A stretch of DNA of 48,124 bases, taken from positions 1 through 48,124 of the forward strand of contig FLMG01001141.1 of NCBI GenBank assembly GCA_900088475.1, written 5' to 3'. Position numbers and translations under genes: made by a program. The notes beneath the pieces are model-generated. The model saw nothing but the letters and a program-made list of their open reading frames with translations, was not told where the DNA came from and searched no databases. Shown here piece after piece: positions 9,871-48,124 of the stretch; positions within the stretch are counted from its first letter, which is position 1, and each line of letters opens with the position of its first letter. Origin of the DNA: Hyphochytrium catenoides (lineage: Eukaryota; Protista; Hyphochytriomycota).

Positions 9871-10379
9871 GTAAAGGCAGCCACCGCGTGCCAAAACAAA
9901 TGCGCTGATATTTTTTTAGTAAAGCATCTTCAACAGTACCCTTTCTCTTGGTCGCCTACTCGAGAGTTATGATGGTCTTGTGTGCCCTCTCTTCTTCCTC
10001 TCTCTCTCCGATTGTAAGTGCTGAAGAAATCAGCTATGATGACTCCTTTCCTATCTTGATGGCGGACCGGGCATTAGATACACCAAGACTTCGTAGCAAG
10101 GTTCTCCTTTTATTGTTATGATTGCTTCTATCCTTTTCTTTAATTTCCTTGCCTTTTCTGGAAGTACTTATTCAGAAGCAGCAAGAAAAAGCAATGCCCG
10201 CCATATATACAGTAGGGTGGTGATTTTAGAGACAGAAGAATGCCCGGGATGAGAGGGGACATACAGTCAAGGGAGGTGATAGGGAGCTCAATATCGAAGA
10301 AACAGTGTCAAAAGCAGCGGAAGAAAGAAGTACCAGGAAGCTATTGAAGGCTCACCCTATACAACGTATTAGGGGCTAG

Positions 10380-13190
10380 GAAGGTTATGTGTAGGACTAA
10401 AAGACTATCGTCTCAATGAGAGCGCAAAGAGGAGACGGCGGAGGTAAAGAAAATTCAGAGCAACAGGTAGCAAATGTCCAGTGGGAGCAGACGGACGGAA
10501 AGGAAGGAAAGCATGATTTACCTTCGACGAGACAGAGAGCACAAAAGAGACAGAAGAGAGGAAGACGGAGGGCCTCGAGTGAAAAGAGACACTGACTTCG
10601 GGGGAGGAGGGCTATTGTTATTGTTCAGTATTTATGATCAGCAAAGCAGCAGCGTGGAAGGGAAGGAGGGCTGAATAGATTGTGAGAGTACGGCCAGCTA
10701 GGACAGCAATCAAGGCTAAGCAATATAACGCAAGAAGAGAAAGCGAAGCTCAAGGAGGCAGTCGGATGTAGGAAAGGCTTACAAGAAAGCGAAGAATGGT
10801 GAGCCATTCACTAGGACAAGGAAGGGTAGCCAAGAGGGCGAGATGAAGGAGATGAGATTCGGCTTGAATGAACCAATATATACGGAGAAGAGCCGAGTAA
10901 GAATGCGCCAAGACGGAGATCAAGCTGAGAGAATCACCCAAATAGTGCAGACACGGAAGACAACAAAAAGAGCAAGTGTTAGAACCCTAAGAAGGCAAAT
11001 GGGAAATGGAGGGCCTGTTCAGACAAGTGGAGCATGCAACAGCTTACAGATTACTTATCAGCCCCAAAGCGATAGAGACACCAAGGGAGATTGAACTTAG
11101 AGGCACCAACAAGAGATCACCAGGAGGAGTGCAAGAATAAGAGGGAGCAAATAATNGAGAGAGAGAGAGAGAGGCATCGTAAGAAAGAGAGGCACGTGGT
11201 GAGACCTGGTGAGGCGGAAAGCGATGGTTCATATATCTCCTATTAGGGTAGACTAGACAAAGTTAAGGAGTGTAGAGAGCGAAAAGGAGGGGGCACTGAG
11301 GGAAAGACGAAAGACCGGGAAGAGATGGGAGGCAAGGAAAGGAGAAAGGAAAGAGAGAGAAAGAGAGAAAGACAGACAGACGACACAACGAGAGAGAGGG
11401 TCATGGTGAGAGGCGAGTCAACCTGAGAAGAAAAATTTTTACATTCCTTCTCTACATCTTCACTCTACCTGATCAAAGTTCTCAGGGAGCGCAACCCAAT
11501 TCTGACATGAATGTCGTGCTTGGCTCGATTCAATCTATCATAAAGAAGACAGAGCTGAGTTAGGAAGAGTATGCGTGATGCCATTTTGAAAGTGGTTGGG
11601 AGAGTAGCAGCGAGAGGGAGAGGATAGGAAGGTTCATGACTGAGGAGGGAAAAGGTCGGTGACATTGAACGAGGAGGAAGAGAGCGTGCAAAGAAGAATA
11701 AAGGAGGAGAAACAAAACGAGAAAACGAGGAGAAAAGAAACTGAGGGAGATTTTGACTGCTGAGAGGAGAGAGAGAGAGAGAATCAGAAGACAGGAAGAG
11801 AAACAGACACACGGAAGAAAGGAGGAGTGAAGAGAAACCTGACGACCTTCAGCAGAGGTAGATGTTGATGATGTCTGGAGCTTTGTCTAGATGTAAATGT
11901 AACGAAGGGATTTGATGATGATTATGTGTCAATTGACTGAATGACTGTGTCTCTCTTAGTGCTCTGCCTATCAATCTGCGAACAGCGACAGAAAGAGAAA
12001 CTAACTAGGGAGAGGGAAAAGAGATGCAAGAAGAAGGCCTGCTGGAGGAGGAAGAGTAAGAAGAAAGGCAGTCATGGTGAAGAGAGATAAGAAGAGAGAA
12101 AGAGGAAAGACCCAGCACTAGGTAGTAGGGAAGAGGCCAGGTAAGACCGAAAAGGGAAGGCAGAGGGCCAATCTGAAGAGGAAAGGGAGATATAGAGCAA
12201 CATAATAAGGAGAAGAGAAAGAGAGTCAAAGCAAGAAAGCAAGGCAGAACAGAAACAGAGGAGGCAAATATGGAGAAAAACAGAATGATGGATCATTATA
12301 AAGACCGTAGTCTTGAGAAGTTGTTGCAGACTTTACTTAGATCCCCTCTTTGCTGCGCCCTCCACCTCTGCTGTCAACGAGAACAGCAAACTTGGCGGTG
12401 ACTCCAGGCTAGCCTGCCACGCTGGTACCTGCTGTGACTGCCTCAGATGATGATATTTCAGAGTGGGAGGCACTCAACATTGCAGCAGTTTCTGATGCAT
12501 ATAAGAAAAGGGTCGCGGGGGGATTGTCGCGAGATTGCATCGTGAGGAAACGCACGGGGCACTCCCTATTCAGCCACATACATTGCATCCCTCTCGCTTT
12601 AGCTCTCGAACGGTATCTGCGGTCTGATGTGATCTCTTCTGTTTCCCCGCCTAGTAGTCTTGGCCCGAATATTGGTGCAGCAAAGGGATTACTCAGCTTT
12701 CTCCTTAGCACCTCGGAGGCGGCGTAAGAAAACACCTGCTAAAGCCATGATGCGACACTGCAGATTGTACAAAGATAGAACCTTGTTGAGGATAGATTGG
12801 AAAGCGCTAAAGGAGGAGCGGAAAGAGGGAAAGGGAAGAGAGGATAGCGCTATAATAGAGAGAGAGAGGTACAAGAAGGGCAAGAAGGAGAAAAGAGGGG
12901 AGTAGCAGCTTACGAGGGTGGAGAGTTCCAAGAACAGAAGAGACACCTACACAAACAGACAAGACAACCAAGAATATAGAGACTACACAGGAAGGACAGG
13001 CAAGGGACAAATAGAGAGAAAATCAAAAAGAGCAGCAGAAGGCGCACAGCGAGACAAAAGAGAGAGACACGACTGCAAATGACGAGGTCATCAGCAGGAG
13101 AGATTTCATCTTGTCGCTTTGATACATACTGTCCACAAAGACTTGTCTCTCCGACAGCAATCTGACATCTGGTGCCTGTGTCCGAGGTGG
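10380..13190 (-). mobile_element. Probable second, highly decayed, intron-interrupted hAT-like transposase relic
   Basis: Minus-strand fragments appear in the expected order, separated by GA-rich (minus-strand pyrimidine) tracts: PDVRLLSERQVFVDSMYQSDKMKSLL (~13095-13175), AFQSILNKVLSLYNLQCRIMAL (~12740-12805), TTFKMASRILFL (~11560-11597; cf. RWNSTyxMlxRxlxL), SLRR*SFSP (~10393-10420). Catalytic residues are not recoverable. Confidence 0.35.
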
Positions 13191-13339
13191 AGAAGTATTC
13201 AGCAGATGGATATACTAGCCATCCGGCAGCTTTGATCCTGACCCATCGTATAGACAGCAGCAGCTTCTACAGCTACCCCTTATTGCTTCTTCCGCCCTCA
13301 CAACATCCCAGCTCGTAGAGTCTCGTCTGACTGCACCTT

Positions 13340-15040
13340 TCTTCCTGGGACTGCTGGCAATTATTGTTGGGGCGGCGCGGGCCTTTATCGATCGCTCTGC
13401 TACTGTCTTTGGGAGGTCCTTCTGCAGCTCCCTCACCTTTACCACATAAAGGCTGATCGTCATCCTCATTGTTACTCGTACGAACAACCCAGCACTCCCC
13501 CTTGGAAGGAGTCAGCCGTTACCAGTCCTTGCTGCAGACAAGTGAACGGAACTCAACACTTGCAGATTCATCACAGCTTCCTCCTACTTTGTTGGGAAAG
13601 GGGTATTATCATCAGGGTCCGCCAACTGCTGAAGAGGAATAGGCATGGATTGCTGCATAGGGAAGGGGTTCTGGATGGCAGCGAATCCTTGACGAACACA
13701 TCAAAGGCCGTGTACTGATAGGAAGTTGAGAAGCCACGAACCAACCACCCTCCAGGCTTTTGATTGGAACCTGGACAAAGGTGTCGAGGTTCGTCGCCGG
13801 AGACTTGAGTGAGACCAGAGTCCCATAAGGATGAAAGAGAAGGTTTTGCCATGACGTTAGTGAGAGCCACCGCCACTATGACAGACAATACCATGATTCC
13901 CGAAAACATCCGATCCAATGGGGGGAGAGCAGGTCTGACAAAAAGCTGCTGGAGTGTACAGAAGAGGATACTCAAAAAGCGCCACAGATTACCCGGAACA
14001 CCAAAAGAGAAGAAACCTTCTTCAATTGCAACCAGGGGACAGGAGCAGCGCCCGAAGGAAAGCGCCCCCGTGCAGGGGAGAAGATGCCCACAAGCGAGCC
14101 TTTGAGCCCAATTCCAGGCCAGCAGAAGATAGGAGAACATTGGATGCCGTCGCTCAAAAATATCTGGACAGGTACTACCCTTGCAGATGTTGTTGAGCAA
14201 AAGGTCAGGCAAGCACTAACCCACCACCTTAACATTGTGCACGTTGTTGGAGTTTCAGGAGGCAACGAGAAGTTCGACGGCCAACGGAGGTGAGTAAGCC
14301 TCGGCGTCTGGCATAATACACAGAACCTTTGAGAGCAAATATAGTAGCAGAGGCACCAACAGAACCAAGACCAGCAGGGAACGCGAGGGAAGAAGCAGAA
14401 GTGATACCAAAGCCACCCAGGCGGATGAATAGGAGGGTAGCTTGTTTCCAGACCAGATCCGACACGGCTGGCAGACCCAATAGCCAAGGCAGAAACCACG
14501 TAAGCAGAGGTCAAACTTGAAAGAAGAGGGAGGCTAGCTGTGAAGGAGGAGAAAGAGGTAAAACCCAAGCCTTGCATGTACTTCATCTAGACGAGAGAGG
14601 ATGGAAGAAACAGAAGAAGAGACAAAAGGGGCGGAACCAGCGAGTACACCTAAGAGTCCACGCCATTCATAACGGCCACTAATCTCGAGACTACCGCAGG
14701 GGAATCTTTAAGACGCTCGAGGTCCATACTGGGCCAGCAAAGCTTGCATTTGCCAAGGTTGAGCTTTGAGCTTAGGCGGGACCGCGCTAGGATGGCAGGT
14801 CTTGGCGACATTTTCCGGCTTCCACTATGCCAAGAAGAGCACCGTCATCAAGGTGCCGCACGTCGTGGAGATCCAAGGAAGGTACAGATATGGGATGTCA
14901 GTCACAAGAGGATGAAGAGCTAACGCAAACAACGGCGGACCAAGAGGATCACCTTGCTAGCTCCGCAAGAACTAGCCACCAAGAGAGCAGCCCCGTCGAA
15001 AATCTGGGATCTAGGATGTGGGAGGGTTGACTTAGTTTGA
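13340..15040 (-). mobile_element. Decayed, 5'-truncated CRE/SLACS-like non-LTR retrotransposon (RT + CCHC + restriction-like endonuclease)
   Basis: Minus-strand motifs in correct order: QGDPLGPPLFALALHPL (~14905-14956), HLDDGALLG (~14830-14855; YxDD position), KLNLGKCKL (~14740-14767), GLLGVLAGSAPFV, KQATL..IRLGGFGITSA..LAFPAGLGS (~14360-14450), GRCSC, EPRHL..GSNQKP...TAFDVFV (13691-13793). Multiple frameshifts and stops. Confidence 0.9.
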
Positions 15041-15742
15041 GTACTACGATGAAGCATGAAGATGGATTTTCTCTGCATCTTGTTAGATTTAGTTAGCCCT
15101 AGAAGAAGGAACTACAACTCAACATTATAAGAAGACAAGAAAAAGAGTAAAAAGCAAGAGCTACATACTCTTTTCTCATCCTTCTTTCAATCACTCTCGA
15201 AAAAGGTAGAAGCCATATTTCTGTTCATTCAGCGATAGTAATAAGAAAGGGACGGGACAAGAGAAGGCATCAGAATCGCTACTACTCTCGTCGGTCATTC
15301 AAGGAAACAAGAGCAAGGTCCAACTGCAGAAGAAAAGGAATGCGCTTCAGAGTCTTAACCACATTGTCTTCATGAATGCCAGGTATGGAGACTCTGATGT
15401 GTAGGCGTTACCCATTGTCATCCGAGGCGAGCGAGGACCAGTGTCCCTACGGAGAATTTTCAAGTGGAGAGCAATCACAGTGAAGCGTCACAAAAAAGCC
15501 GCCAAACCTTCAACGACACAAGAGCTAGCCAACCCCGCCTCCCAACCACAGCCCCAAACCAGCGGGACAGACCGCAGCTCCTCCACAACCTTCTTACAGC
15601 CAGACTAGTACCTCTTCACTTCGGAATATTAGATAAAGGTCCTTATGATGATTAAAGCTTGAGTTTCCTATTATAAGGGATAATACTGGCCGGAACGACT
15701 TCATCTCAGGTTTGATGGTCGTACTTTTGTCGCCACTGGGTG

Positions 15743-15786
15743 CCATGCATTGTTTAAGTAGAGACCATGCATTGTTTAAGTAGAGA
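15743..15786. repeat. Perfect 22-bp tandem duplication
   Basis: CCATGCATTGTTTAAGTAGAGA x2. Confidence 0.95.
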
Positions 15787-15957
15787 GCGCCAGGAGAGTG
15801 TGGCTTGTTAGAAGAAGGAGGAGAGAAGGCCTAACCTATTGAAAGAGTGAGGACAGCTCCTTTCCTTTGCACTTCCAGGAGAAGCTAATATCGTAAAGTA
15901 CAAATATAATAGCAGCATCATATTAACTCGGCTTGGTAAATGACGTCTGGATTGTTA

Positions 15958-17190
15958 TCACCACGGTATGAGCTCTATAAAAGAACAGGCTAAAAGGGCT
16001 GCCGTCTTCTTATCAGACACTGGCCCATCTTTCCCAAGCATCTGGCCAAGGTACTTTGCATCAATTCCGATGACTGCAGCACCCAACTCAGGTGCGTGCC
16101 AAAAGCGCAAACTGCCGCCGGCAAAAAGAAATGCTCTACGGTAGGCATCGGGGTCTTGAATCCTAAAGCCACGAATGTCATTCTTCAGATATCTCCATCG
16201 ACCAAGCGTCAAGCCCGTGAAGCTGATCGGGGCCAGGTGTTCAACTTTGCTAGGAGGAGAGCCATAAAGTGCAGCTTGACTCAGCAGTAAGTAGTGCCTA
16301 CCGCCATTTGTGTCTCTCTCAAGGCGATCCCATACAGCACTGGTGTCATTTCTTTGAGCTTGGTCGCAGAAATCGAGTACCATGTCTGAGACATGGAGAG
16401 AGACAACTGGACTTGAAGGTTCTCCACGTGTCGAGTCTTCTTCGGATACAGGACTATAGGCTCGAAATACATTAATAACTACCTGATAGTCTGAAGGGTA
16501 CTCAGGAGGTAGAGCTAAGGACATAAACCGCATTTGTTGCAAGCCATGACCTGTGACGAAAGGTTGAGGTAAACGCGATGCGTTGCAGTTGCCGTAAGAC
16601 AGGGACTGCCCCGTAGTTCCTCCTCTCATACCCTCCTCGTCTGTCAACTGCGTAAGGAACATGATAAATGGCAATTTCGATGCCTCGGTGTTGTTGACCT
16701 CAATGGCGGATACGATATCGGTAGAAGAAGAGGTGGTGGTGTGATTCTGAAACTTGATCGGGGTGTAGCAGAGCGACTCTACATACAGATGACTGCCATA
16801 TCTACTAGCAGTAGAAGGGGCCGGTGGTCTTGTTGTCGTCTGTAGGTCGTGTGATGATTGACTTGGATCAGGAGGAGCGGGCGAACTCCGGGGAGAAGAT
16901 TCATCCTTGAAGTAGAGATAGCCTCCTACAGCACCTACTAACAAGGGTATGGCCAAGAGTAAGATCCACAGCAGCCGTCTCCTTGTTGTCTCTTTGTCGC
17001 TCTTCTTTTTAAGGGGCGCCGTTTCACATCTTTCGCTAATAACAGCAGCAGAGTCTTCAGGAAGAGCGGTGGCTTGATGAAGCCTTGGCACAACATAAGA
17101 GCCTTCTGGCACTTCGTCCTCTCCTTCTACGACAACATACACTTGTTGACTCCGTTGCTTCGGCACTATCTCTACCACTACCGTTTCCAT
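15958..17190 (-). CDS. Uncharacterised type II single-pass membrane protein (410 aa, intronless ORF)
   Basis: RRR followed by TM LLWILLLAIPLLVGAVGGYLYF, a Pro/Ser/Thr stalk, then a ~270-aa globular region with N-glycosylation sequons (NHT, NNT, NAS, NDT) and 4 Cys. No family recognised. Confidence 0.65.
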   Translation of the reverse strand: METVVVEIVPKQRSQQVYVVVEGEDEVPEGSYVVPRLHQATALPEDSAAVISERCETAPLKKKSDKETTRRRLLWILLLAIPLLVGAVGGYLYFKDESSPRSSPAPPDPSQSSHDLQTTTRPPAPSTASRYGSHLYVESLCYTPIKFQNHTTTSSSTDIVSAIEVNNTEASKLPFIMFLTQLTDEEGMRGGTTGQSLSYGNCNASRLPQPFVTGHGLQQMRFMSLALPPEYPSDYQVVINVFRAYSPVSEEDSTRGEPSSPVVSLHVSDMVLDFCDQAQRNDTSAVWDRLERDTNGGRHYLLLSQAALYGSPPSKVEHLAPISFTGLTLGRWRYLKNDIRGFRIQDPDAYRRAFLFAGGSLRFWHAPELGAAVIGIDAKYLGQMLGKDGPVSDKKTAALLACSFIELIPW

Positions 17191-18866
17191 CCTCCTCCTC
17201 GTCCTTTTGAAGAAGCTCTAATGGCTTAACGCTATGGCGCAAATACGTCAGGCTAGGTCAGCAGCCTGTGATTGACCGAGACCAATGATGGGAAAGAGTC
17301 CTAACCCTCATTCAATCGCTAGGATCAACCAGGTCACTTTTGATTGACTACTTCGAGCCTGGGAAATTTCCCAAACAGCATGCCTCTTCATCTGCTGACC
17401 TGCTGCAATCATCATCGTGCTCGCTTTCCTAGACCGAAAGATTTGACAACAACGAGTGTGAAAAAGAAAGTGGTTGCCGCTGAACTGAAGCTTCCACGGA
17501 GGAAGGACTGTGCTTCCAAGTTCTGCAAGCGCAATTAGCGAATCCACCAATTGGGAGCTAGGGCTGGGAGAAGCGTTGGAGAAGTAGAACCATTGCTCAT
17601 CAGTTCCAAATATTCTCCGTATGCCCCCAAGCCCACCCTACTTGATGAGCTAAAGACTCATGACCTCCACTGACTGACTGCAGAACTATTATTTGATCGT
17701 CCTACCACGACGTCCTTCCTCTCCCGCCAAAGATGCAGCGGTTTTTCCCTTCCCCTCTGTTCTGGCCTGTTATTTTGGGTTTGAGGAGGGCGGTAGTGAA
17801 GGCAGGAGAAGGACTCCGTGAAACAAAAACAAGCCCACCAATAATGACCTTCCTTACTATCATTGACTGTCACCACTGTGAAGTTCTTCCTACATTATTG
17901 TGAAGATACGCCGTCATCAGCTCGGCTGCAATTTGTGGTGGTTATTACTCTCTTCCTCCTCTCCTTCATAATGGTGGTGGTATGATTGGTTGCTGGTACT
18001 GCTAGCAACTACCTAACAAAGAACAGAGAAAGAATGTAAGGACTGCAGTTCCAAGAGAGAATAGAGAGACAGAGGGGAAGGAATACAGAGGGCGCAGGGT
18101 AGAAAGGAATGTGGCTACAAGTACTGTAGTAGGAGAGAAGTGCACATGATGAAGATGGAGTTGACGAGTGAGCTCGCAGTGTGAAGATGCTGTCCCCCCT
18201 CGGCGTCCAACTAGCCGTTTTATTCTACCTTTAAAGTAGCTATCTATGATAAGTTGCGTTACTATAGGATTTATACTAGACATTTGTTGTTATCTTCGGA
18301 ATAGTTACTCGAACCGTACCTCCATTGTGGCCTTGTGAGGGCTAAAGGAGGCAGCAACCTGGCTCTCTCTCCTCTCTCCTCTCTTCATCCTTCTCCAACA
18401 ACGCCTCTGCGCTGGTGGACGGCAATAATGAACAAGAGGAGCCTTCCTCAGTGCACTGCGCGCACAGAAGAGTTCAGGAGCCGCAGGACGGTCCTCATTT
18501 CGTGATTCTGACAGAGAGCTGGATGCAGAGAGCATCGGGTCGTTGTTCAACTGTATCGTTCACCTAAAAGCAGCACGAGAAGAAGCTTGCCTGTCGCCAA
18601 GCGCATCATTATCGGCCTATTCTTCTTTCTACTGATCTCTGTCGGTGTGATGAGGATATGTTGGAGACTGATTATGCTGAGACAGAACTCGTGACCAGCC
18701 TAATTGTTCCTCCAGCTCTCTGCTGATTCGTGCGAGCTCGCTTGGGCAGCTGGAAGTATCCAAAATTGTTGGTGTCGTTGCCGTTAATTTCCTACTATCG
18801 ATCGCCTTTCATCTAACAGGCGGTATTTGCTCCTGTCCTGCTACCAGGTGTTTGACGAACTAAGAC

Positions 18867-21800
18867 ATGGGGCATGAAGGAGAAAGTCCTGCTGCGCCTA
18901 CGTCTCCCCGTCCTTCGTCAGCGCTCGTAGACAGTGGTCCCGAAAATACTCCATCATGCTCCCCAAGAAGTGATCAACCACCTATGAAGGAGCAAGTCCC
19001 CTCAGAAGAGGTGTGTCCATTAGTATCCCCGATCCCCCTGAACCGGCAATCTTTGACCACGACGATGCGTTTTGATCCTTTTTCCCCTGCTTTCTTCTTC
19101 CTACTCTTACCAGCAGCATAAGGCAATCAGCACACAGCCTTCAACATCATGCAGTCGCTCTTCGGGACCGGAAGAACCTGAGCATGCAGTTAGTATCCCA
19201 ATTTTGCGGACTCCTCTGACAATGAAGGAGCTATATATATTTCGATTCCTTGAGTTACTCCGGCTGCACGTGGAGCCACTGCTCTCTCAAGAAGTCTTTT
19301 GCATGGCAAGTCTCATTGTGCAAGCGCAGCATCAGAAAACTTTATCACTTTCAGCAGACGGCTTGAAGGCAGTGCCACAGCCGAGCTGGCAAGCGGAAAT
19401 TCTCGTGCTGGAGAGGAGTGTCGTCTCGCGCAAGAAACCTCTTACTGAGCACAGTCAGTTAGACATCCTCACCATCATCAAGTGCCTTGCTACGTGGCTC
19501 CGAGTCCAAGGTCTTGCACCCTACGCTTGCCTCTACGACAATCATCGTGACGCGTTGCATCAGAATCTGACTCTGCTTCAGAACGTGAGAAATAGATTGG
19601 CTCACAATTGGGAGGGGGTCACAGAGGCAGAAGTTCTTTCTGCTCTATACGGACTGAAGAATATAGTAAACGTCATGGAGGAAACCGTGCAGGAGAAGCT
19701 TGCTCCGGAATCCATCGCAAGATTGAGCATAGTACAAGGCAGGATCTCAAGAACGATCACAGAGCTTATGGGGCTTTCATCGGCATTCATGAAGCGTGCC
19801 GAGAACAGACAGAGGTTAGATGATAAGCCCATTCACAGTCAAAGTTCCACCACTTTGAATAATGATGCCCATGCCCAGCCTTCGAGGGGGTTGCATGCCC
19901 ATTTGACTGACCTAAGTCTCCAGTCATTCGGCCTTCTTCTAGCGGTGAAACTTGTGTCCACTCTCGAGCAGTTTGTGGTCCGGAGAGTTTATCAAGCGCA
20001 GGAGCTAGGTCATCTTCCTCCGGACAGCGAGCTCGGCCCAGCAGTGACGTGCTTGCAGAGATTGTGTCAATACATTCGTAATGAGCGGACTCATCAACCC
20101 CTTAGACTTGCCTTTCAAAGTGTCCAACCCACAGAGCTGACTAAGCGCTCTCCAAGTCCGTTGGCCACCTCCTCTGTCCTCGATGACTTGTTATCTCTTC
20201 GAGCTGAACTTTTCCATGCTCAGGAGGAAGTCGAGGTTGGGAGCACGACCTTAAAGCCAGAAGATGCCAAAGTGAGCAGCCTACAACGTTGGTTGAAGGC
20301 CAGTGCCTGTATCATTGGACAGTTCGCCACAGCGAAGCATTCTATCATGTCTTCTCTGTTGCCAAGCATGGACGAAGATTTGAGCTGTGTCATCACAGCG
20401 GCGAAGACAAGAAAATTTCGCGGAGAGCAGCCTCTTAAGGAGAATTCAAAGGATTCGTACAGGCACATTACCTTAGGGACTAGCGCCATTAACAGCCATT
20501 CATTTTCTTCTGAGTCGTCGTCATGCTCATTCCAGACGTATCTTTACATCTCCTGCCATCCTCCTGTCGCCACAGAAGACAAGGATGCAGAGCAAGAGAG
20601 GAGCCGATTTACAGAACGGAAGCAACCCGATGGCGCTCTCTTAAGCGCATCACCAAGTCCCGCCAGGCATAAAGTATCGCCCGTCCTCCGTATCCCTTTG
20701 CCAGACCCTCCAATTTTAATAGGTAGAGACGTGACAGTGCAGGAAATAGAGGATATTCTGCTGCCGAACTACTCTAAAGAGCTGTATCCAAGAGGACAAA
20801 CTCAGGACGAGGAGGACTTAGCGCGCCATCCATGCTTCCTGCGGTCCGTTGTGCTCTATGGCATGCCGGCCATGGGAAAGACAACGTTAGCGACAGTGGT
20901 GACAAAGAAGATTGAGGCGAGTGGAAGGTTCAACTACCATCTTTGGTTGACGGGCTCCTCTGCGACGCTGCTGGAAGCTGGTCTTGTGGACTTTGCAAAA
21001 ACTTACGTCGCACCCTATCAGATATCGAGAGCGAGCAGCGTAGCGCAAAGTCTTAAGGTGCTCAGGAACTGGTTTGCCGCTCGGAGCGACTGGTTCATCG
21101 TAGCAGATGACGTAACTCCTGCAGCAGCAAGGATTTTGCGCTCCCTACTTACGCCTAATATGGATGGAGCCAAGGACGTGAGGAAGGGAGGAGGCACTAT
21201 CTTATTCACAACGTTACACAGCAGTCTACCCAGTAGCGGCCCAGATGCTTGTGTCTGGCCAACCACAGTGTGGATGGAGCTTCCAGCGCTCGCCCCTTCA
21301 TCTTCCATGCAATTGCTAGAGTGGGTGATGGTTTCCGATATGAACCCTCATATGAAGCAGAGCAAGTCTTCCAAGGCAAAGAGAAAGAAGAGAGTAGAGG
21401 ACATGTTCCAGGGAAAGAGCAAGGAGGACATTTCTCTAGTCCTAGAGGCAGTCATAGGTAACAATCCCCTAGGGGTCTGGCTCCTAGGACGGCTTCTGAG
21501 AAAGGGAGAGCCTTTAGAGGCCATCCTTGAGGTCGTTGATAGTGATCGTGCGTCTCTCACCTCTGCGCCTCTAGAGCTCTTAGCTCTTGTCCGTAATGGT
21601 TCGGATGAGGGCTCCACGACGAACAGCGGGAAGAATGGAGGAAATCGCAGTGCTCCTACTACTTCCTCAGCGCGTTCTGTCCTAATGCCTGGGAGGGTGC
21701 GAGGGATCGAGGGAACTGTAGCTATGATAATGCAGAGAATGGAGGAGCAAGCCATCCAGCATCAGAGACGGAGGAGCCCTGGGTCCTCGGATGACGTTGA

Positions 21801-24546
21801 GGGCGACGGACTAGTCTCAGGAGGAGAAACAAGAGAAATTGAGCCAGAAGTAATCCAGGGCTGGCTCGCTGTGTTATTTGTTTGCAGCCTCCTCAGTCCT
21901 TCTGGGATTCCGATTGAGCTGCTCTTGGCCATCACCACTAGTCAGCAGAGCTTGACACGTTCTACGATCGCGGAAGAAGCAGAACAGAGAGCTAGCAGCA
22001 GGAGCTTACTACCCTTTCCCCTTTCGTCCGTGCAGCTATATTCTGCAGTCGATCTCGCCGAATCCCACGGCCTTCTCATGCGCCGCGAACTGCCTAGTCA
22101 ATCGCATTTTGCTCCTCCCTCTGTCCTTATAATCATGCATCAGCTCACACAAAGAGGAGTAAGGAGAGTACTGCAGACAAAATGGGCAGAGTGTCTTATG
22201 CCCTTAATGGAGAGCGTGATGGCTGGGATGACTGGTCCGCTGTATGGCTGGTGCAGACCGCAAGAATTTGGAGATCGACAAACCTTTGGTCTTTGGTATG
22301 AAAATGTCCAGAACTCTAAAGTGGGAAGGTTCTGGAGAAAACAAGCCACCTCACCGGGAGGCACTTTCTGGCAGGGAGGACGGACTCAAGTGTCACCGCC
22401 ACAGGCGAAGGGAGGCCCTGCTGAGGGTGGTGGTGCTCACGACGGTGCCTTGCACAAGTCCGTCGTATTATCTAGGGAAGAAGCTACGTATGGAGAGAAT
22501 GAGCATCCCTATCTCTCCTCGTTGATGGCCTTGGCATGGCTGTTCGCGGTGATGGAAGAATTTGAGAAAGCTAAGGACTGTCTGGCCCAAGTAATTGAGT
22601 GGGGAGACGACGAGCAGCAGATGGGACAAGCACTAGGTCGGAAACTGAGACTCCCATCATTATCTTGCCAGCAAACCAGGAATAGTCCCGGCCACCGACA
22701 TCATGGCCCCGACGTAGGGGCCGAGAGTAAACTCAAGCACGAGGAAGTATCTCCTGCGGCTGATCTCACGATTGAAGGCTTTCGAAGCTTGATTGGTAGG
22801 GGAATCCCTATCTTCGCTGTTCTAGCTAGCCGCGCCTACATTACCTCTCGGACCTTGGAACTGGACATCTACAAGGCTTGCTTGGAACTAAGTCAAATCC
22901 TAAAGCCCCTTTTAGTTGGAGGTAACCGGCGCCTTATCTTGGACTACTGCCAGTTACTCTTGAGCCTTGGAACTTCAATGGCTCTTAACGGCGTTCAAAT
23001 TGTGATGGCTCAAAGGATCGTCTCGTCTGCCATTGAGCTCGCGCGCCCTTTCTCAGATATTACTCGGCCCTATGACGACTTTCATCACGTCATGGCACAA
23101 TCATTGGTCCTGATGTCGGGACTAGCGGCTGCACACTTTCTAGACTATGCTAAGGCCTACACATTTGGCTGTGAGGCCCGACGCTGGATTGAAGCATCTG
23201 TGGAGGTTCCGCAACAAGACGTGAAGCATGCGAAGAAAGCTACGATAAAAGCTGTGACATCACCTTGGGTCTCCACAGAGAGGACATCTAGGATCTCAGT
23301 GAGAACGCTTCCATCCCCCCAGCTCTCTTGGATGTCAGGGCTGTCTGATACCTTGCAGGTGGCAGCGACTCGGTCGAAGGCTCTTATGGCTCACATTGGC
23401 GACGTCTACCTTTACTGTGGAATGGCGCAGCTTCGCCTCGGCAACTTGGATGAAGGCGTAGTCGAGATGCGTACAGCTCTCTCTCTTGCGCTTTTAATTT
23501 TTCCTGAGGAGCACAAGACGGTCCTGGTTTACCAGGGCTACCTATGTGAAGGATACCGGTTGGCTGGAAATGTGAAGGAAGGAGAAGAGTTATGCCTTGA
23601 CGCATTAGACAAAGCCAAGAACAACCCTTCCCTCGGTGAGAACAGCTACCTTTATGGGATGCTGCTCTCGTTGAGGGCCGCCTTTCATGCTGAGAAGGCA
23701 GAGTTCTTACAGGTCTATGACACAATGGTAAAAGCCCGAGACCTCATCGCTGCCACCAGAGGAACAGAACACTTCAGGGTGGCAGATGTTTGCACCTGGA
23801 TAGCAGAGGCTCTGTTTGAGCTACAGAGATACGAAGAGGCCCGAGCACTACTGGAAGATAGTGTCATTCCAACCCTGCGGCGGACTCAGGTCATAGCTGA
23901 CAAAGGCTTCTTGGCCCGGGCACTCAGCCTACTGTCAAACATTCTCCTGACACAGGTATATACAATGGGATCTCTCGTCGAAAGGGACAGTGGTGCTGGG
24001 GAAATTGAATTGGGTAAATGGCAAGAGAACAGGACGGCATTCTTGAAGAGATGTAAAGAGCTCTCAGAGGAAAGTCTGGAACTCGCACTCCAGCCAGGCT
24101 GCGGAAACGGTAAAGCACTTTTATCGTTCGTCTTCTTAGTAAAAGGGAAAGTTCTTTATGCAAGTGGAGAACGGGAGGAAGCCCTGGCAGCCCTAGAACA
24201 AGGCCGAGACCATTTGAGCTGCCGTAGCAGTGCTTACCGGAGAGGAGACGTGCACTTTGAGATGGGCTCCGCTCTCTGTTTCCTGCCTGTAAAGTGCAAG
24301 GAAGGTAGGGCTGGACAAAGAGAGGTGAAGAATAAATCAGAAAATCACGGCAACAGCGAAGACCATGACACATGGGACGAGCAATATGGTCGTGGCTGTA
24401 AACTCCTTCACGAAGCTCGAGACCTCTTTATGGGTCAGCTAGGAGAGGCTGACAGGAGAACCAAGGCGGCCAACAGAGCCATTCACCTAGTCATGAGCAG
24501 AAGAAGAGGACGAATGGATTACCAAGCAAGCTTTCCTCCACGCTAG
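18867..24546 (+). CDS. STAND/NLR-like protein: two HEPN-like modules + NB-ARC NTPase + winged helix + TPRs (~1858 aa; exons 18867-19010 and 19114-24546)
   Basis: ATG exon of 48 codons, then a GTGTGT..CAG phase-0 intron joining in frame to a 5.4-kb ORF. Motifs: RNRLAH (19588-19605), RAELFH (20200-20217), LIGRD (20716), Walker A GMPAMGKT (20860-20883), Walker B WFIVADDV (21091-21114), GGTILFTT (sensor 1), GNNPLG (GxP, 21457), MHQLTQ (22135), and kinesin-light-chain-type TPRs (GENEHP, PEEHKTV, LGENSY, GTEHFRVA, LGEADRRT). Confidence 0.9.
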
Positions 24547-25163: not shown

Positions 25164-27285
25164 TTAGCCTGATTGTCCTCCTTCCTGGCCTGACGTGACG
25201 TGCCTGACAGAGGCATTCTGTTGTAAAGGAGGAGCAGCAGCTGGAGTGCCATTCTGGTAGCCTTCTGAAGAACCGTGTGCGGTGTACCTAACAGCAGGCG
25301 ATGCACCAGGCATGGCCACCGCCTTGGGAACTGAGTCTACGGAGGATGGTTCCTCACTGTCACTCATAGGCAACGCGTCTGCCTCAACCTCAGCAGTGTG
25401 GTTGTTGGGGAGTATGGGCCTCTCACCGTTGGGACTAGAAATTGACATTGAATGTTGGGCCAGCAAATCCTTTGCAAGTTGTATATCTTTGACCATGTCT
25501 TCTCTATACTTCCCGAGATCAATGTCCAGCCCGCTGTTGGAAGAAATAATTGCATCTAATTCCTGCAAAGCAGATATCTGCAACCTATCCAGAGCTGCAA
25601 TACAGGCGGTGGCATGAGCAGAAGCGGCAGGAAGACACACAACGAGAAGGATTGAGCAGGCGAACACCACCTCTTTGAGCCACCGACCTTGAGGGGAAAT
25701 AAGACCCTTTCTGTAGGCCTGATTGCCTGCATCAACGTAGTTCCTGAAGACAACCACTCCAGCAGCTTGCATCGTCTTCACCATCTGCTCACGCTGCAAG
25801 ACGTCCTTTTCTCGCTTCTTGGGCTTGAGCAACTGAGTAATATCATGAATGAAAGGCTGGGCCATTCCGTGGTAGAGCAGCTGCAACGCTACATCCGGAT
25901 CTCCTATCAAGAGGACGGGAACGCTGTCAATGCCCACGCTCTAGGGAGAAGATAAGGCTCGCAAGAAGCAAAACGAGGGTAGCAGCAGACCTTGTCCGTT
26001 GTCCCCAAGGAAAAATAGCTGATAACCTGGGAATCCTATGATCAATCGCCGGATGTTCTGCCACATAGCAATTTAGCAAGACAAAAATGTTAGGGGAAAA
26101 AGCTCTAACAATGTCAATGCCTTCTAGAGCTTACATCCATCTTGTCTTTCACCATCTCGTGATTGAAGAAGGAGTCAAAGAGCGATCCTCCCATCATCAC
26201 TGCAGCATGGGAAGGTGATAATGTGAGGTTTGTAAGAGGCAAAAAAGCTTCAAGCGCTCCTCTATGGTAACTCTATTGGAACTCACGGCGGTAAGCCCCC
26301 GGACCGAGGATCTCGTTCAGTTCCCACTCTGTCCATGGGGCCAACAGCTTTCTAGCTCGGGCAGAGAGGAAAACGAGAAAGGATCTGTTCGAACGGTGAT
26401 GAGCAGGAAAAGACGAAATCAGATGGGGCAAGGGCTACCACGAGCGACACCCGCCAACACTCCAAGCTGTCAGCTCGAGCGTTCAGCATGAACAGACGAT
26501 AATGACCTGAGTTTCGACAGTCCTCCATCGAGCGACGGGCTTTTTGAGAACTTGACACCATTTGTTAAGGCGTCAGTGAATGCTCCACTGCCTGGAAGTG
26601 CAGTTCCACTAGGAAGCCCAGTATTTAAGCCAGCAATTCGAGTGTCATCGATATCACTGAGGAGAGGAAGGTAAGAAACGAGAAAGGTTTGTGAGTACCC
26701 ATTGCTCTCTTGTTGGTGGTTTCAATGAAGCTGTCCAGCTTACGAGATGACCAGGCGGTGCTCTCCGGTTGATGGTGGCGGCGATGGCATCAGATTGACG
26801 AACTTTAGCAAGATGTTGTCCAGCGTGCCCTGCTGATCCTTGTTGAGACTGAAAAAGAACTTTTCCCATTCCAAAGGAGAGCCCACCGCGTTTTTCAGGA
26901 AAAGAAGATCTTCAGCACTTTTGACAGACGTGAAAATGATCCCAAGGGCTCGGGCTGGCTTGGGTCTAGCACTTAATGGCGCCAGGGCCTTCACCCATTC
27001 CGCTTTCTTTTGAATGGGGGTGCTTGGATTGTTAGCGTTAGCTTCAGCCTCTGCAATCAGCGGCTTCAGCTTATTTACTGCCGCACCATTCGTGATGAAC
27101 TTAGGGAAATCCTCGAGTAGGAAGCTTGGAACTGAGTCTGCCAAGAACTCAACAACCCTATCGATGAGGCTTGCTTCCGTTGCCTCGGGGACTGAGAGAA
27201 GTATGACAAGGGCGAGTAAGGTAACGATTGGAGTCCATGGGCCGAGACATCTGCTCTTTCTTTGCCTTGCCATTCTGCTATCCAT
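25164..27285 (-). CDS. App1-type HAD-superfamily (phosphatidate) phosphatase-like protein with N-terminal hydrophobic leader, multi-exon
   Basis: Spliced motifs: LVIS|DIDDT (exon ends 26744/26656; DxDxT at 26641-26655), LPGSGAFTDAL, FMLNARA, GGSLFDSFFNHEMVKDKMD, NIRRLIIGFPGYQLFFLGDNGQ|GDPDVA, FIHD, FRNYVDAG..AYRKGLIS. The leader WTPIVTLLALVILLSVPEATEA looks like a signal peptide. The start codon and two short introns are uncertain. Confidence 0.8.
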
Positions 27286-29899: not shown

Positions 29900-31738
29900 C
29901 GTTAGAGGTTGGTACGACCTGCAGTGGTGGTGCTACAGGAAGTGATGATACTAATGAGCAACAAGTTCTCCGGTTGTGTCCGATCTGATGGCAAACACTG
30001 CAGGTGATTTTTCTCCTCTTTGGCTTCTTGGGGCCTGCTATGAGGTCTCCTCCTGCAGCGCCTTCTAGAGCAACGGAGACGATAAAGGAGACGGAGAATA
30101 GTAAAGTGGGTGCCATCGTAAACTGTTTAACAATTTGAGGCGGTACACATACCTTGGGCCTTTCCTTTTACCTCTTCTGTGTCCCTCATCCTCTTGCGCT
30201 TCGAACTCTCACCATTCAGGAGATACCACCTAGAAGTTCTCCTACTTCGTACCAGCCGCCCCTCTTCTCGCAGCAACCGTTTTGTCAGGGCGTCTTCCTT
30301 TGCCATTTGTCGCCTCTCTTGCTTCTCATTATACTCCTCAATTCTCCGTCTTTCTTCGGCGACTTGAAGCTCATGACAGAACAGCCTATTCGGTGACTGA
30401 CTCGCTACGATCTTTCTTCTCACCGTTTTCTTCTGACTCTCTGATAAGTGAACAATCTCCGAGTTGGCAAGGTTGATCCCATTTCGCGCAAGGACCCTGT
30501 TTTCACGGTCAGACAGGGTGTTGAGAGGTAGAGGTCAATGAGAAGATTGAACTGCCCATACCTGGAGTCCGGAGCAGCATTCTCTTTGAGCTCGCTCAGG
30601 TTGATGCGTTGCCTATTGACCGGCCACATTCCTCTGCTTTCCCACGACTTTTGTGTGATCTCTCTTGTGACCGCTGTCTCGAACGCTCGGTCGAAGACAC
30701 TCGCCCTTTTTTCTCGAGGAAGGGACTTCCCTCTTGTTCGCAGCGCCCAGGAATGTACCTCCTTTCTCCACTGCGATTTGAAGGCTCTAAAGATTCCACC
30801 ATCCAACGGTTGCAGAAGATGAGCCAGATGAGGTGGAAAGGAGAGGATGTGTATTCCATTGGCCACGCACTTCCTGACTCCAAGTGCAACGTGCGCCTTA
30901 TGGTTATCGAGTAAGAGCAACACAGGCCTGACTGGTGGAGCGTACTAGATAAAATGGTCTATCCATTTCTCAAAAAGAGCAGAGTCAATAAAAGCACTCT
31001 CTGTTGCAGCCACTCTGCTGCCAGGTGGGGCCCCGTCCAGGAGAGTGCTCGCGACTTGTTTGCCCCTGAAGATGAAGAATGGAGGAATGTAGGTTCCATT
31101 CCAGTACACAGGGCGATAGTGTTCTCCCGGGTGGCACCTCTTGTATGTCTCACATTCTCTGCGCCCTCCTTTGCATTCACCTTCAGTCCAGGCCCGCCTT
31201 GAGGTTCTAGCCCAGTCTCATCGCAGTTGAAAATCTGTGCTGCAGTAAGTAGGGGATGCTCCTTCAGGAAAGCTTTATACTCAGCGAAGAAGTAATTGAC
31301 CTCTTCATCCGCCGCAGCGTTGGTACGATCAGCGTCCAGAATTCTTGACTTTTGAAGACTGAGTCTGTGCCGGTGCCTCTCGAGGAAGCGCCTAACCCAC
31401 TTATCAGACGGACCCTCCATAGGGAATCGATGGGTCCGTCCATCCGCAACTATGTCAAGGATGGTTGCTTTGATTTGCCAGGTTGTAGCCGGAAATCCTC
31501 TACGGGCTCTATCGATGAGATCTTCAACAAGTGCATCCTCTTCCTCTGGTGACAAAGCCGGACGTGGGCCAGGACGCTTACCAACGAAGGGGACCTCTCC
31601 TGCCACATGACGCCTGATCGTGCTCGCCGGGACATGATAAAATCTTTCAGCCCCTCTCAGAGATCTCTCCTCTTGGCGAACAGCACTGACTGCCGCCTGA
31701 AGGGTGTCCGCACTATACGTTTTTCTGGCGGTCAACAT
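29900..31738 (-). mobile_element. pogo/Fot1-like (Tc1-mariner superfamily) DDD transposase pseudogene
   Basis: HTH-psq (YSADTLQAAV...YHVPASTIRRH), CENP-B HTH (LSPEEEDAL...GFP...KWVRRFLERH), D1 IFNCDETG, D2 LLLDNHKAH and D3 LQPLDGGIF (34 residues between D2 and D3), a coiled region, and C-terminal CSVCHQIGHNRRTC (29961-30002). Frameshift near 31105, in-frame TAG at 30945-30947, further breaks 3'. TIRs not identified. Confidence 0.93.
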
Positions 31739-33967: not shown

Positions 33968-34334
33968 ATGTAACGCCTCCCAGGACGGCCGAAGACAACT
34001 TCACAACAATTTTGACATTACCTGTGTATAATGAAAATCAACTGTAAATTACATACTGTTATCCAGATTGCTCGTTCGAGTCCTTCCCCTCTATTTATTA
34101 TTCACATTGGTTGTCCACAATATGTCCGTTATGTGAAGAATGATGGTGTGTTTGGCAGTGATGAAGAGACATGCTCCACACTTCTGTTGCTGCTGTTGCT
34201 GCTGCCGCTAAGTAGAGGGAGAGCCGTGGACAGACAGGGATTTAAGAAGAGGAGCTGGAATTGAAGATGAAGAGAATGTAGGGAGGGAGATAGTTCTAAA
34301 AGGAGGTGAGATGCTGTCGAGACCATGAAGACGA

Positions 34335-34363
34335 GAGAAGAGAGAGAGAGCGAGGGGAGAGAG

Positions 34364-34410
<47 letters not shown>
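34335..34410. repeat. (GA)n microsatellite
   Basis: Long, near-perfect GA run. Confidence 0.95.
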
Positions 34411-35395: not shown

Positions 35396-37153
35396 ATGGC
35401 ATGCTTAGGCGGACAAATGAGCGGTAGAGAATTGTTGCCCTTATCAACGCCAAAGAAGAGGGAGCAGGACTCCAAGCCACGGACACGACGCCCTTCCTTT
35501 TCCTCTCTTTGCTTCCTGATACTCCTGGCTTTCAATTGCCTCCTTCACTTAGGTCTAGGAGAGTTAAGGCCTGACAATTATGACATTGTGATGGACAAAC
35601 AGCAGCGTTATGCAGCGCAACCTAAGAAGGATGGTGCACTACTGCAGGAGGCTGAGAGGGACGTCGCACTGGGGAGCAAACGATCGCTGATATCTTCCTT
35701 ACCGTCCTTTCGGTTAAGAAGAATGCAGCAGGCGCGTCTTCCTCCTCTTCCTCCAAAACGAGCGACCCCAACACCAGCAACTAACGGTTTGGGCTTTGAC
35801 TGTCTCGATCTGGCAAACATTGCCAACCCTCTTGGTCTCTCTTGTGAGGACCTTCTGAGGCTCTTTCCTACCACTTCCGGTCCGATTAGAGTCCCGGCAA
35901 CACCATCGGCTATCCCTTTCCCTACAGCCAGCCCGACGCTCTCACCCGTGCCTTTCCCTGCCCCTACTCGGGCTAGAGACCAAGATCCTGGAGCTGTTGG
36001 TGCGAAGGGTAACTCGGACTCAGCTACTTCATCACCGCAGGCAGAGGGAGTTGGCGCATGGAGATCTACCTTATCGCCATCCCCACCAGCAACAGACCAT
36101 CAGATGGGAGCCCAGGGAGGGAATGCTCCTGTTCCACTTCCTGCTGAGAAAGATGACGCAGGCCCGAACGGACGTCCAACAGACGGAGCAGAAGGGGCAG
36201 GAAGTGATGGGGCACCAAACGGGCTCAATGGGAACTCAGATGACGGCAACCCTACAACTTCCGCGCTGTTCTACATTCTGCTTATCGTCTCTCTTACGGT
36301 CTCTGTGGGTCTTCTTGCCATGATGATGGTACTCTATTCGCGGAAGAGAGCCCGGAAGAGGGCGCAAATGATGGAGATTGTTGCCCAGTACCACAGTAGC
36401 CACGACAGAGAGGAGCAGGGAGGGAGAAGCTTCATGAGGGTTAGACATCCGGACACCACGGAAGATGGGGGCCGCTTGGGAACCAGCCTCTCTATGCTGA
36501 ACTCTGTCCGCGGACCCCTGTCACGAAGTCCGTCGGTGCCTTTCCAGGCTTATCGGGAGGTGAATGGCAGAATGTCTGTCACACCATCCTCCGGTGTGTT
36601 TCTCTTCTCTCCCACCGCTGGCGAGGATGTCAACCTCAGAGGGTTTAGACGGGAGAAATTGACTAAGAAGGAGCGAAGGGCAGAAAAGAAGCGAAGGCGA
36701 AAGGAGAGGAGAGAAAGAAGGGAGCGGAGAGAGAAGAAGAGGGTAGAGGATGAGCCTCCCTCCCCTCCAGAGCCTTATGCCATGCCAGTGCCCTTCCTAA
36801 TAGCTCCAGAGACTGTCGAGACTCCTGCTGAGGAGAGGACTCCTATTGACCAGGGAACTATTGGTAACGAGACTGCGCATGCTGAGGAGAGGCTCTCTGC
36901 GCAGGAGAGCGCTCCCTCTACGAACGAGAGGACCACGGCTAATGAAGACACGGTAGCTCACCCTCCCGTTCCTGGGGCCAGCACTGGCACAGGCAGAATG
37001 GCCACCACAAGGAGATCTCTTCCTCTCCTTTCTACTCGGGGCGGCCTCCTACCATCTTCGGTGCAAGGACCTCAAGAGGGCGAGAACGGCCGTCGGCCCG
37101 GCCTGGGAGGCCGAGCGTCTATTGCGTCCACGACCTCCTCGTTTGTTCTCTAA
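35396..37153 (+). CDS. Uncharacterised single-pass membrane protein with Pro/Thr/Gly-rich ectodomain and long disordered tail (585 aa, intronless)
   Basis: N-terminal hydrophobic stretch FSSLCFLILLAFNCLLHLGLG, PATP/PTASPT stalk, TM ALFYILLIVSLTVSVGLLAMMMVLY followed by the basic stop-transfer SRKRARKR, and a K/R/E-rich tract in the tail. Confidence 0.7.
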   Translation: MACLGGQMSGRELLPLSTPKKREQDSKPRTRRPSFSSLCFLILLAFNCLLHLGLGELRPDNYDIVMDKQQRYAAQPKKDGALLQEAERDVALGSKRSLISSLPSFRLRRMQQARLPPLPPKRATPTPATNGLGFDCLDLANIANPLGLSCEDLLRLFPTTSGPIRVPATPSAIPFPTASPTLSPVPFPAPTRARDQDPGAVGAKGNSDSATSSPQAEGVGAWRSTLSPSPPATDHQMGAQGGNAPVPLPAEKDDAGPNGRPTDGAEGAGSDGAPNGLNGNSDDGNPTTSALFYILLIVSLTVSVGLLAMMMVLYSRKRARKRAQMMEIVAQYHSSHDREEQGGRSFMRVRHPDTTEDGGRLGTSLSMLNSVRGPLSRSPSVPFQAYREVNGRMSVTPSSGVFLFSPTAGEDVNLRGFRREKLTKKERRAEKKRRRKERRERRERREKKRVEDEPPSPPEPYAMPVPFLIAPETVETPAEERTPIDQGTIGNETAHAEERLSAQESAPSTNERTTANEDTVAHPPVPGASTGTGRMATTRRSLPLLSTRGGLLPSSVQGPQEGENGRRPGLGGRASIASTTSSFVL

Positions 37154-37703: not shown

Positions 37704-38154
37704 NNNNNNNNNNNNNNNNNNNNNNNNNNNNNNNNGAGAGAGAGAGAGGAAGAGAGAGGAAGAGAGAGGAAAAGAGAGAGAGAGAGACAGAGAGAGGAAG
37801 AGAGAGGAAAAGATAGAGAGAAAGAGAGAGAGAGAGAGAGGAGAGAAGAAAGAACCTCTTATTACAAGAGGGGTAGTGAGCTCCTCAAGTACAAAGAAGA
37901 GGAAGCATCAACTCACGCCCTTCACACTTTCACACAGAGTTGTCTTCCGTTAATTGTCGCCACCAAGAAAATCCATGGTTTTTTCCTATCTACTAAGAGT
38001 TACGTTTCCTGGAAGATGGCGGACGTGTGCCTTTTCATAGGCGCTCAACCTACTTTCGTCGCTATTATGATATGACCAGGACCGCTTTTCTCCTCCGGCA
38101 TCCTTTCGCCTGTAACATCTCTCTCTCTCTCTCTCTCTCTCGCTCTCGCTCTCG

Positions 38155-38205
<51 letters not shown>

Positions 38206-38210
38206 TCTCC
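37675..38210. repeat. (GA)n tract with assembly gap (N 37704-37735) and (CT)n/(CTCTCG)n tract at 38118-38210, upstream of the sirtuin
   Basis: Directly visible simple repeats. Confidence 0.95.
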
Positions 38211-38618
38211 TCCTAGTTCTACAGTGTCTGTCGCTGGCTCGCTCTTCCTCTCTGCTCTTCCTCTCGCTTCTCTCTGGCGCCATGATCTAACGCCAGGCCT
38301 TGTCACTCTCGGTTGATGTTTTGCATGCTCCCTCACGTCCTCCTCCTGCGCCTCAAGGTTCTGAGCCTGACAGCCTGAGGCTCAAGACTTGTTAGCGTTG
38401 TCGCAGGAGTTGGCTTGATAAGTTGCGCCACCTTCCGTTTGTCCTGCTTGACCCACTCTCTCATCTTTCCCACCTACCCTCGTTTCTTCTGTCGCTCAAC
38501 TCTTCAGTTGAGTCTCTCTTGCGGTTCATCTTTTGATCATAGTGCACTGTGCCTGGCGCCTCGATTCTCTGGGCAGAGCTCGATTTAAGGTGGAAATCAA
38601 GGTGAAAAGAAGTGCGCC

Positions 38619-41600: not shown

Positions 41601-42160
41601 GTCCCTCCAACGGCAATAGCGAGGGAGGAGACGAAGGACGAAGACGGAGGCCCTATTATATGGTAAAGACCTATATCGCTTGCGATCCCGTTCCCCCTTG
41701 TCGGTTCTGCTGTTCTTATGCTCTTTTACTGCGCCTGAGCGCTTCCATTGCTGCGTGTTCGCTAATCTGACTCCTGCCTCCCTCACGCGTGGGTCTTTAT
41801 CTCTCACCTCTCGCCATTCCCTACTTATAGCGACGGCTGTGACTCCAAAGTTCAAGCGCCCTCAACCTATTATCACTGCAGGTTAGGCAGACCTCTAAGG
41901 CACCTTAGTCTGCCAGTTCCCAGCCTTCATCGAATCTACCATAGCATCTCCTTTTCATGGCTGGCACTGTCGCCGCTGTACTCGCTCCATCATCAATATC
42001 TCTTCTCTCTTCTGTGAGCTTTTTGGTACCCCTAACCTCACCACAATTTTCTTTCCTGCATAGAATGTGCTTCGACTTCGACCTCTGTGAACGCTGCTAT
42101 GCACAGAAGTCACGAGACCACGGTCACGAGTTCATCAAGCTTCCTGCGACAGAAGATTGA
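38619..42160 (+). CDS. SIR2: Class I (SIRT1/Sir2-like) NAD-dependent deacetylase with C-terminal ZZ-type zinc finger, 13 exons
   Basis: Spliced motifs: KNIVVLAGA|[14 protein letters not shown]|[93 protein letters not shown], then IICDGC...[17 protein letters not shown]...HGHEF. Stop TGA at 42158-42160. Confidence 0.95.

Positions 42161-46122: not shown

Positions 46123-48124
<2,002 letters not shown>

Follow-up and report, generated by a model that had tools for sequence, protein, structure and literature searches.

A protist gene for an NLR-like NB-ARC-TPR protein with a probable, extremely divergent HEPN domain at its N-terminus

The 48,124-nucleotide stretch of Hyphochytrium catenoides DNA analysed here (contig FLMG01001141.1, called the window below) carries on its plus strand a gene that is, judged by its motifs and profile matches, a protist NLR/apoptosome-type switch protein combining a NB-ARC ATPase with TPR repeats. 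A preliminary description had read this gene as an NLR-like STAND protein armed with two HEPN domains. The explanation that we favour, and to which we give a somewhat better than even chance, is an NLR/apoptosome-like STAND receptor in which one chain would combine a divergent RNase domain of HEPN type (module 1), a NB-ARC switch and a TPR sensor. From the N-terminus, the proposed order is a disordered leader, module 1 with the motif RNRLAH, a helical module 2 whose nature is uncertain, a long linker of low complexity, the NB-ARC domain, a winged-helix/MHD-like region and the TPRs. Residue numbers given below are amino acids (aa) counted within the open reading frame (ORF) 19072..24546, and coordinates are positions in the window.

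A probable HEPN domain in module 1

Module 1 (aa 49-210; 19216..19701, +) is quite probably a HEPN domain, because weak matches from three libraries of hidden Markov models (HMMs) and the neighbours found by a protein language model converge on a single helix, the one that carries the motif RNRLAH (aa 173-178; 19588..19605, +). HEPN RNases are metal-independent, and the primary determinant of their active site is an Rx4-6H motif in which a polar residue (N/D/H) follows the Arg and which is placed at the end of a helix (PMC3710099). RNRLAH, a candidate catalytic Rx4H motif with Asn after the Arg, agrees with this definition and, as far as low-confidence models can tell, with the typical helix-end position. 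In both AlphaFold runs it closed a predicted helix at residues 105-134 of the modelled piece (H178 being residue 134), followed by a loop and by another helix at residues 141-165. The rest of module 1 was also predicted to be helical in these low-confidence models, with a helical insert ahead of the motif helix.

The profile searches pointed to the same place. Four PADLOC models of Csx1, Csm6 and CARF_HEPN type placed their C-terminal HEPN part on aa 163-210 (E 9e-4 with the long query), and a 71-aa fragment containing the motif gave Csx1 as its best PADLOC match (E 8.8e-5), together with CARF_HEPN (E 4.6e-4). NCBIfam Csm6 aligned at the same RNRLAH spot (E 0.03). When the 71-aa fragment was compared with Pfam, three of the five best matches were HEPN families, namely HepT-like/DUF86, Cas_Csm6_HEPN and DUF3644 (E 0.05-0.1), the last of which is counted among the HEPN families (PMC3710099). 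The Pfam models HEPN_Swt1 and HEPN_DZIP3 did not match module 1, and a scan of the full ORF (1824 aa) found no HEPN-type matches besides those at aa 163-210. Further evidence was obtained with an ESM-Atlas feature search, in which module 1 reached a top score of 0.92. All of its named neighbours were HEPN_Swt1 (33 of the 100 neighbours), HEPN_DZIP3 or DUF4559, the latter co-occurring with HEPN_DZIP3 among them.

Several results weigh against this assignment. No HEPN model attained its curated threshold for module 1 (Pfam HepT-like and Cas_Csm6_HEPN scored 13.8 and 13.2 bits, respectively, vs. cut-offs of about 23.5), and all of the HMM matches share one motif helix of about 45 aa, hence they are not independent of each other. 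An exhaustive phmmer search with aa 45-493 against 1.84e9 representative proteins gave 0 matches at E<=0.001, and word-indexed searches with the N-terminus and with module 1 alone returned no homologue, for module 1 even at E<=10. The HEPN fold is an up-down bundle of four helices. AlphaFold models made without an alignment had a predicted local distance difference test (pLDDT) score of 41 for a 449-aa piece and of 49.5 for a 215-aa piece, with predicted template modelling (pTM) scores of 0.33 and 0.41, respectively. Foldseek against the PDB and an Atlas shape search, both run on the low-confidence 215-aa model, returned generic helical bundles, nothing significant and no HEPN. The low AlphaFold confidence results from the lack of homologues and thus of an alignment. 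We regard the generic helical matches of such models as uninformative, speaking neither for nor against HEPN.

Other searches of the same region gave little. The N-terminal 449 aa taken as a whole matched nothing in Pfam, in the PDB or among potential homologues, PDB sequence searches with the N-terminus and with the motif fragment were likewise negative, and a metagenome locus scan found no relative. The PHROGs search returned two weak families of unknown function. The matches obtained by tblastn against plasmids were discarded; they were chance matches, on nucleoside hydrolase genes, and indicated no relationship to a bacterial protein. By all of these searches, the N-terminal domain is extremely divergent and has no detectable relatives.

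Alternatively, the N-terminal helices may be something other than a HEPN RNase, i.e., another effector or an adaptor such as a four-helix-bundle membrane-disrupting domain or a protein-interaction domain, with the Rx4H there by coincidence. Such a reading would account for HEPN matches that are all sub-threshold and motif-centred, for the lack of support from structure models and searches, and for the lack of homologues showing conservation of the motif; Rx4H alone is, moreover, common in this protein. We nevertheless consider it not very likely, since the three HMM libraries and the language-model search brought up HEPN families with no competing family, and since RNRLAH has both the Asn after the Arg and the helix-end position that are typical of HEPN. 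It is much less probable still that module 1 derives from a HEPN domain and is catalytically inert, with a role in RNA binding or dimerisation such as has been proposed for the HEPN dyad of Swt1 (PMC3710099). Inactive HEPN domains are indeed documented (PMC3710099), and extreme divergence of the domain would suit such a role. However, the inactive versions described in that work have lost the motif, whereas R, N and H are all intact in RNRLAH and are unchanged among the haplotype variants listed for this gene.

Module 2 and the possibility of a second HEPN domain

Of the HEPN effector that had been assigned to the N-terminus, module 1 thus keeps weak, convergent support from profiles and from the language model, while the second HEPN has in its favour no more than a motif and some weak leads. 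Module 2 (aa 281-430; 19912..20361, +) is helical in predictions of very low confidence and may be a second, degenerate HEPN domain. The two modules had been thought to be similarly built, yet no measurable similarity between them was detected, and there was no sign of an internal duplication (BLASTP E 92; Smith-Waterman z 0.87, P 0.18). The named Atlas neighbours of module 2, i.e., a RiboL-PSP-HEPN cluster, Cas_Csm6_HEPN and DUF4145, all belong to the HEPN superfamily and had scores of 0.80-0.84.

The start positions reported for the two Rx4H motifs were correct, being 19588 for RNRLAH (aa 173) and 20200 for RAELFH (aa 377). RAELFH (aa 377-382; 20200..20217, +), which had been proposed as the second catalytic motif, is the weaker candidate for this role. 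It has no polar residue after the Arg and lies in the middle of a predicted helix (piece residues 320-348). In the models, another motif of module 2 that had been overlooked, RNERTH (aa 336-341; 20077..20094, +), is the better candidate because it has the more canonical form RNxxxH and terminates a predicted helix (piece residues 278-296). The sole listed haplotype variant close to it is I335V.

We also determined how often such motifs arise in shuffled sequences. The bare Rx4H occurs six times in the ORF, and its N-terminal enrichment had a P of 0.018 in the shuffle test, after which the count of bare Rx4H was dropped as evidence for HEPN. For two RNxxxH within the first 480 aa, the shuffle P was 3.5e-4. 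A third RNxxxH, RNSPGH (aa 1203; 22678-22695, +), is found in the low-complexity linker that leads from the winged-helix region to the TPRs; we took it for a chance occurrence and rejected it as a functional motif.

These data bear on the idea that both modules are HEPN domains and form an intramolecular composite site on one NLR chain, as in Cas13. The two RNxxxH, which are 163 aa apart and both at predicted helix ends, the low shuffle P of this pair, the exclusively HEPN-superfamily character of the named Atlas neighbours of module 2 and the precedent of HEPN dyads in Swt1 and Csx1 MJ1666 (PMC3710099) are all consistent with it. We nonetheless judge it unlikely. Module 2 had no HMM match in Pfam, PADLOC, NCBIfam or PHROGs, either as a whole or as isolated fragments, and it does not resemble module 1. 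One third of shuffled proteins attained an Atlas score of 0.84, RNSPGH in the linker indicates that RNxxxH can arise by chance, and the model confidence across module 2 was 25-50 (AlphaFold, single sequence). A more specific proposal, in which two very divergent HEPN domains with RNRLAH and RNERTH would form a single-chain dyad, i.e., a pre-assembled, autoinhibited RNase site that is unlocked by STAND oligomerisation, as a Cas13-like pair under NLR control in a lineage-specific domain family lacking detectable relatives, appears improbable to us. The explanation that we favour, with one HEPN domain in module 1, makes no use of a second.

The NTPase, the repeats and the integrity of the gene

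The region at 20716..22161 (+) is assigned to a NB-ARC/AP-ATPase-type STAND NTPase and a winged-helix region on the basis of motifs read by eye, Pfam NB-ARC and NCBIfam FxSxx_TPR. NB-ARC domains are recognised by, among other motifs, a TTR at RNBS-B/sensor-1 and motifs of the GLPL and MHD types. Reading without an alignment, we found LIGRD (aa 549), a Walker A motif GMPAMGKTT (aa 597-605, fitting GxxxxGK[ST]), an RNBS-A-like FNYHLW (aa 620), a Walker B motif WFIVADDV (aa 674-681, fitting hhhhDD), TILFTTL (aa 709), a GLPL-like GNNPLG(V) (aa 796) and an MHD-like IIMHQL (aa 1020; MHQ at aa 1022) with Q in place of D. A low-complexity insert stretches the distance between the GLPL-like and MHD-like motifs. 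As read, the series is AP-ATPase-like. Pfam NB-ARC matched aa 592-677 only (E 6e-5), with a score (22.9 bits) just below the gathering cut-off of 23.5, and NCBIfam FxSxx_TPR, a bacterial NB-ARC-TPR model, aligned to aa 587-719 (E 2.7e-4). A word-indexed search returned no homologues of the NB-ARC region, and the PDB sequence search gave the plant NLR NRC1 as its sole match (E 0.34). The motif set had been called complete. Its motifs can indeed be read, but the Pfam match remained sub-threshold and the RNBS-B/sensor-1 in TILFTTL is TTL, not TTR. This Leu at the place of the expected Arg counts against the receptor reading that we favour, and may have an effect on ATP hydrolysis.

The presumed sensor consists of C-terminal TPR-rich helical repeats (22459..24471, +). 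Pfam TPR models (TPR_2, TPR_12, TPR_4, TPR_8, TPR_16 and TPR_1) matched at aa 1151-1176, 1536-1597 and 1690-1730. TPR_2 scored 29.1 bits, above its cut-off of 27, and TPR_12, TPR_4, TPR_8 and TPR_16 were near their own thresholds. The location of a TPR region C-terminal to the NB-ARC domain was thereby confirmed (Pfam TPR_2/TPR_12/TPR_16 at aa 1536-1730), and Pfam, NCBIfam and the directly read motifs agree on the NLR-like STAND (NB-ARC + TPR) reading that had been put forward.

The gene is read from an uninterrupted frame of 1824 codons (19072..24546, +). In the splice model derived from the sequence, the proposed exon 1 (18867..19010, +) has 48 codons encoding a Ser/Pro-rich leader; it runs in frame from an ATG to a GT donor. 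The proposed intron (19011..19113, +) is a GT-AG intron of 103 nucleotides (nt), with its GT at 19011, its AG at 19112-19113 and a polypyrimidine tract. Exon 2 (19114..24546, +), which is part of the open frame, encodes the remainder of the protein and includes the stop codon. When 18867-19010 is spliced to 19114-24546, the product is exactly 1858 aa long and its only stop is the terminal one, as expected from the earlier reading of an almost single-exon gene of about 1858 aa.

DNA runs of the same organism yielded two haplotype-like sets of contigs across the locus, which allowed a comparison of haplotypes. The well-supported indels in the exons were all in-frame (-3 at 18952, -6 at 19865 and -9 at 21178), and three 1-nt indels in exon 2 were confined to the low-depth run X3. 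The frame-breaking indels (+1 at 19064 and -1 at 19091) both fell within the proposed intron. This pattern lends indirect support to the splice model. Among the 40 variants listed (of 123), the single-nucleotide polymorphisms were synonymous in 22 cases and non-synonymous in 18 (pN/pS about 0.25); the corresponding numbers for aa 45-480 were 10 and 7 (pN/pS about 0.2). All of these 40 leave the residues R, N and H in the candidate motifs unchanged. Because the frame is open, a splice model can be given, the exon indels are in-frame and pN/pS is low, we conclude that the gene is, on the evidence of its DNA, real, intact and under purifying selection, and that this applies to its N-terminus too.

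In the piece 18844-19243, which comprises the leader and the intron, 29 differing letters and 5 gaps over 400 nt set apart two contig forms of near-equal depth. The coding pieces differed by about 1% between haplotypes, vs. 29/400 in this piece. The two contig forms suggest a diploid with diverged haplotypes, or else two strains. A search for a paralogue of the gene within the window found none.

As to the surroundings of the gene, a 259-aa ORF (30962-31738, -) some 6 kb downstream matched HTH_Tnp_Tc5 (E 7e-6) and a Psq-type HTH, and is probably, by these matches, a remnant of a pogo/Tc5-like transposon. Three other long ORFs, at 35396-37153 (+, 585 aa), 15958-17190 (-, 410 aa) and 25164-25937 (-, 257 aa), had no Pfam match at E<=0.01. 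Strong purine/pyrimidine strand skew was observed at 1-2000, 10001-16000 and 38001-42000, where GC and AT skew were both near +0.3 or -0.2, and long GA/TC microsatellites are present at 34333-34409, 37736-37851, 38118-38209 and 47701-47786.

Proposed working and relation to known systems

The active site of HEPN RNases is composite, being built by two HEPN domains, and RNase L and Ire1 are activated through induced self-association. In the explanation that we favour, binding of a ligand to the TPRs would release autoinhibition, nucleotide exchange would then drive oligomerisation of the NB-ARC modules, and the HEPN domains of neighbouring chains would be brought together. Because HEPN sites are composite, such pairing between chains would create an active, metal-independent RNase, which may cut cellular or invader RNA and cause growth arrest or cell suicide. 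One HEPN domain per chain would be enough, as in RNase L/Ire1, and a tandem would not be required. This whole course, beginning with TPR sensing and ending with RNA cleavage, is our inference; computation supports the domain composition alone.

The class of architecture to which this protein would belong is already described, because fusions of an N-terminal HEPN domain to NACHT or STAND modules have been published for cnidarians, cephalochordates and bacteria. In cnidarians and cephalochordates, the Swt1-clade HEPN of CXorf38 occurs in fusions with NACHT and DEATH domains, and bacterial proteins with an N-terminal HEPN and a STAND module have been reported (PMC3710099). In surveys of cnidarians, NACHT was combined with a DZIP3-like HEPN more often than with any other partner, in up to 83 genes per species, and this HEPN was frequent at the N-terminus of coral NACHT/NB-ARC proteins (PMC8260672, PMC10236652). 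HEPN domains are also among the enzymatic effectors of bacterial NACHT proteins (bioRxiv 10.1101/2022.07.19.500537), and inactive STAND modules with HEPN effectors have been described (PMC8195603). Our literature search found no paper joining HEPN, NLR and protist. The gene would therefore be a new, unusually divergent protist member and not a new class.

With the metazoan HEPN-NACHT NLRs, the protein would share an N-terminal HEPN resembling the Swt1/DZIP3 clades as the effector of a STAND module, C-terminal repeats and a presumed immune or cell-death output at the level of RNA. It differs from them by a NB-ARC/AP-ATPase-type NTPase with TPRs and by its protist host, and also by a HEPN too divergent for Pfam HEPN_DZIP3 or HEPN_Swt1, by an extra helical module and by the lack of any detectable homologue. 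The bacterial HEPN-STAND and NACHT/Avs-type receptors would have in common with it the N-terminal HEPN, the STAND switch, the C-terminal sensor and a logic akin to abortive infection; in contrast to them, our gene is eukaryotic, contains an intron, encodes long linkers of low complexity and has no detectable sequence relationship to bacterial proteins.

The likeness to RNase L/Ire1 is one of working only, i.e., induced self-association that pairs HEPN domains into a composite RNase, and we do not claim membership. These proteins use ankyrin/pseudokinase or kinase modules rather than a STAND ATPase, and their KEN domain is circularly permuted (PMC3710099). Candidate immune receptors of NB-ARC-TPR type are described in brown algae and fungi (PMC3341825, PMC4986451). 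What they share with our protein is a NB-ARC switch that precedes an array of TPRs, in a eukaryote that is neither plant nor animal; the comparison covers the NB-ARC and TPR parts, and the N-terminus of our protein is probably HEPN. Cas13, Swt1 and Csx1 (MJ1666) have two HEPN domains per chain, a feature that would be shared here only if module 2 is a HEPN. Unlike them, our protein has no guide RNA, PIN or CARF module, its second HEPN is only a candidate, and activation would come from STAND oligomerisation.

If the HEPN assignment is true, RNase-armed NLR-like receptors would exist in a protist as well as in animals and bacteria, here on a NB-ARC-TPR chassis. It would strengthen the idea that HEPN RNases have repeatedly been recruited by STAND switches as effectors of cell suicide or antiviral defence. 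The putative effector domain of this protein escapes standard annotation, with no Pfam match above threshold and no homologue in 1.84 billion representative proteins, which illustrates how much of the diversity of NLR effectors in protists may be hidden.

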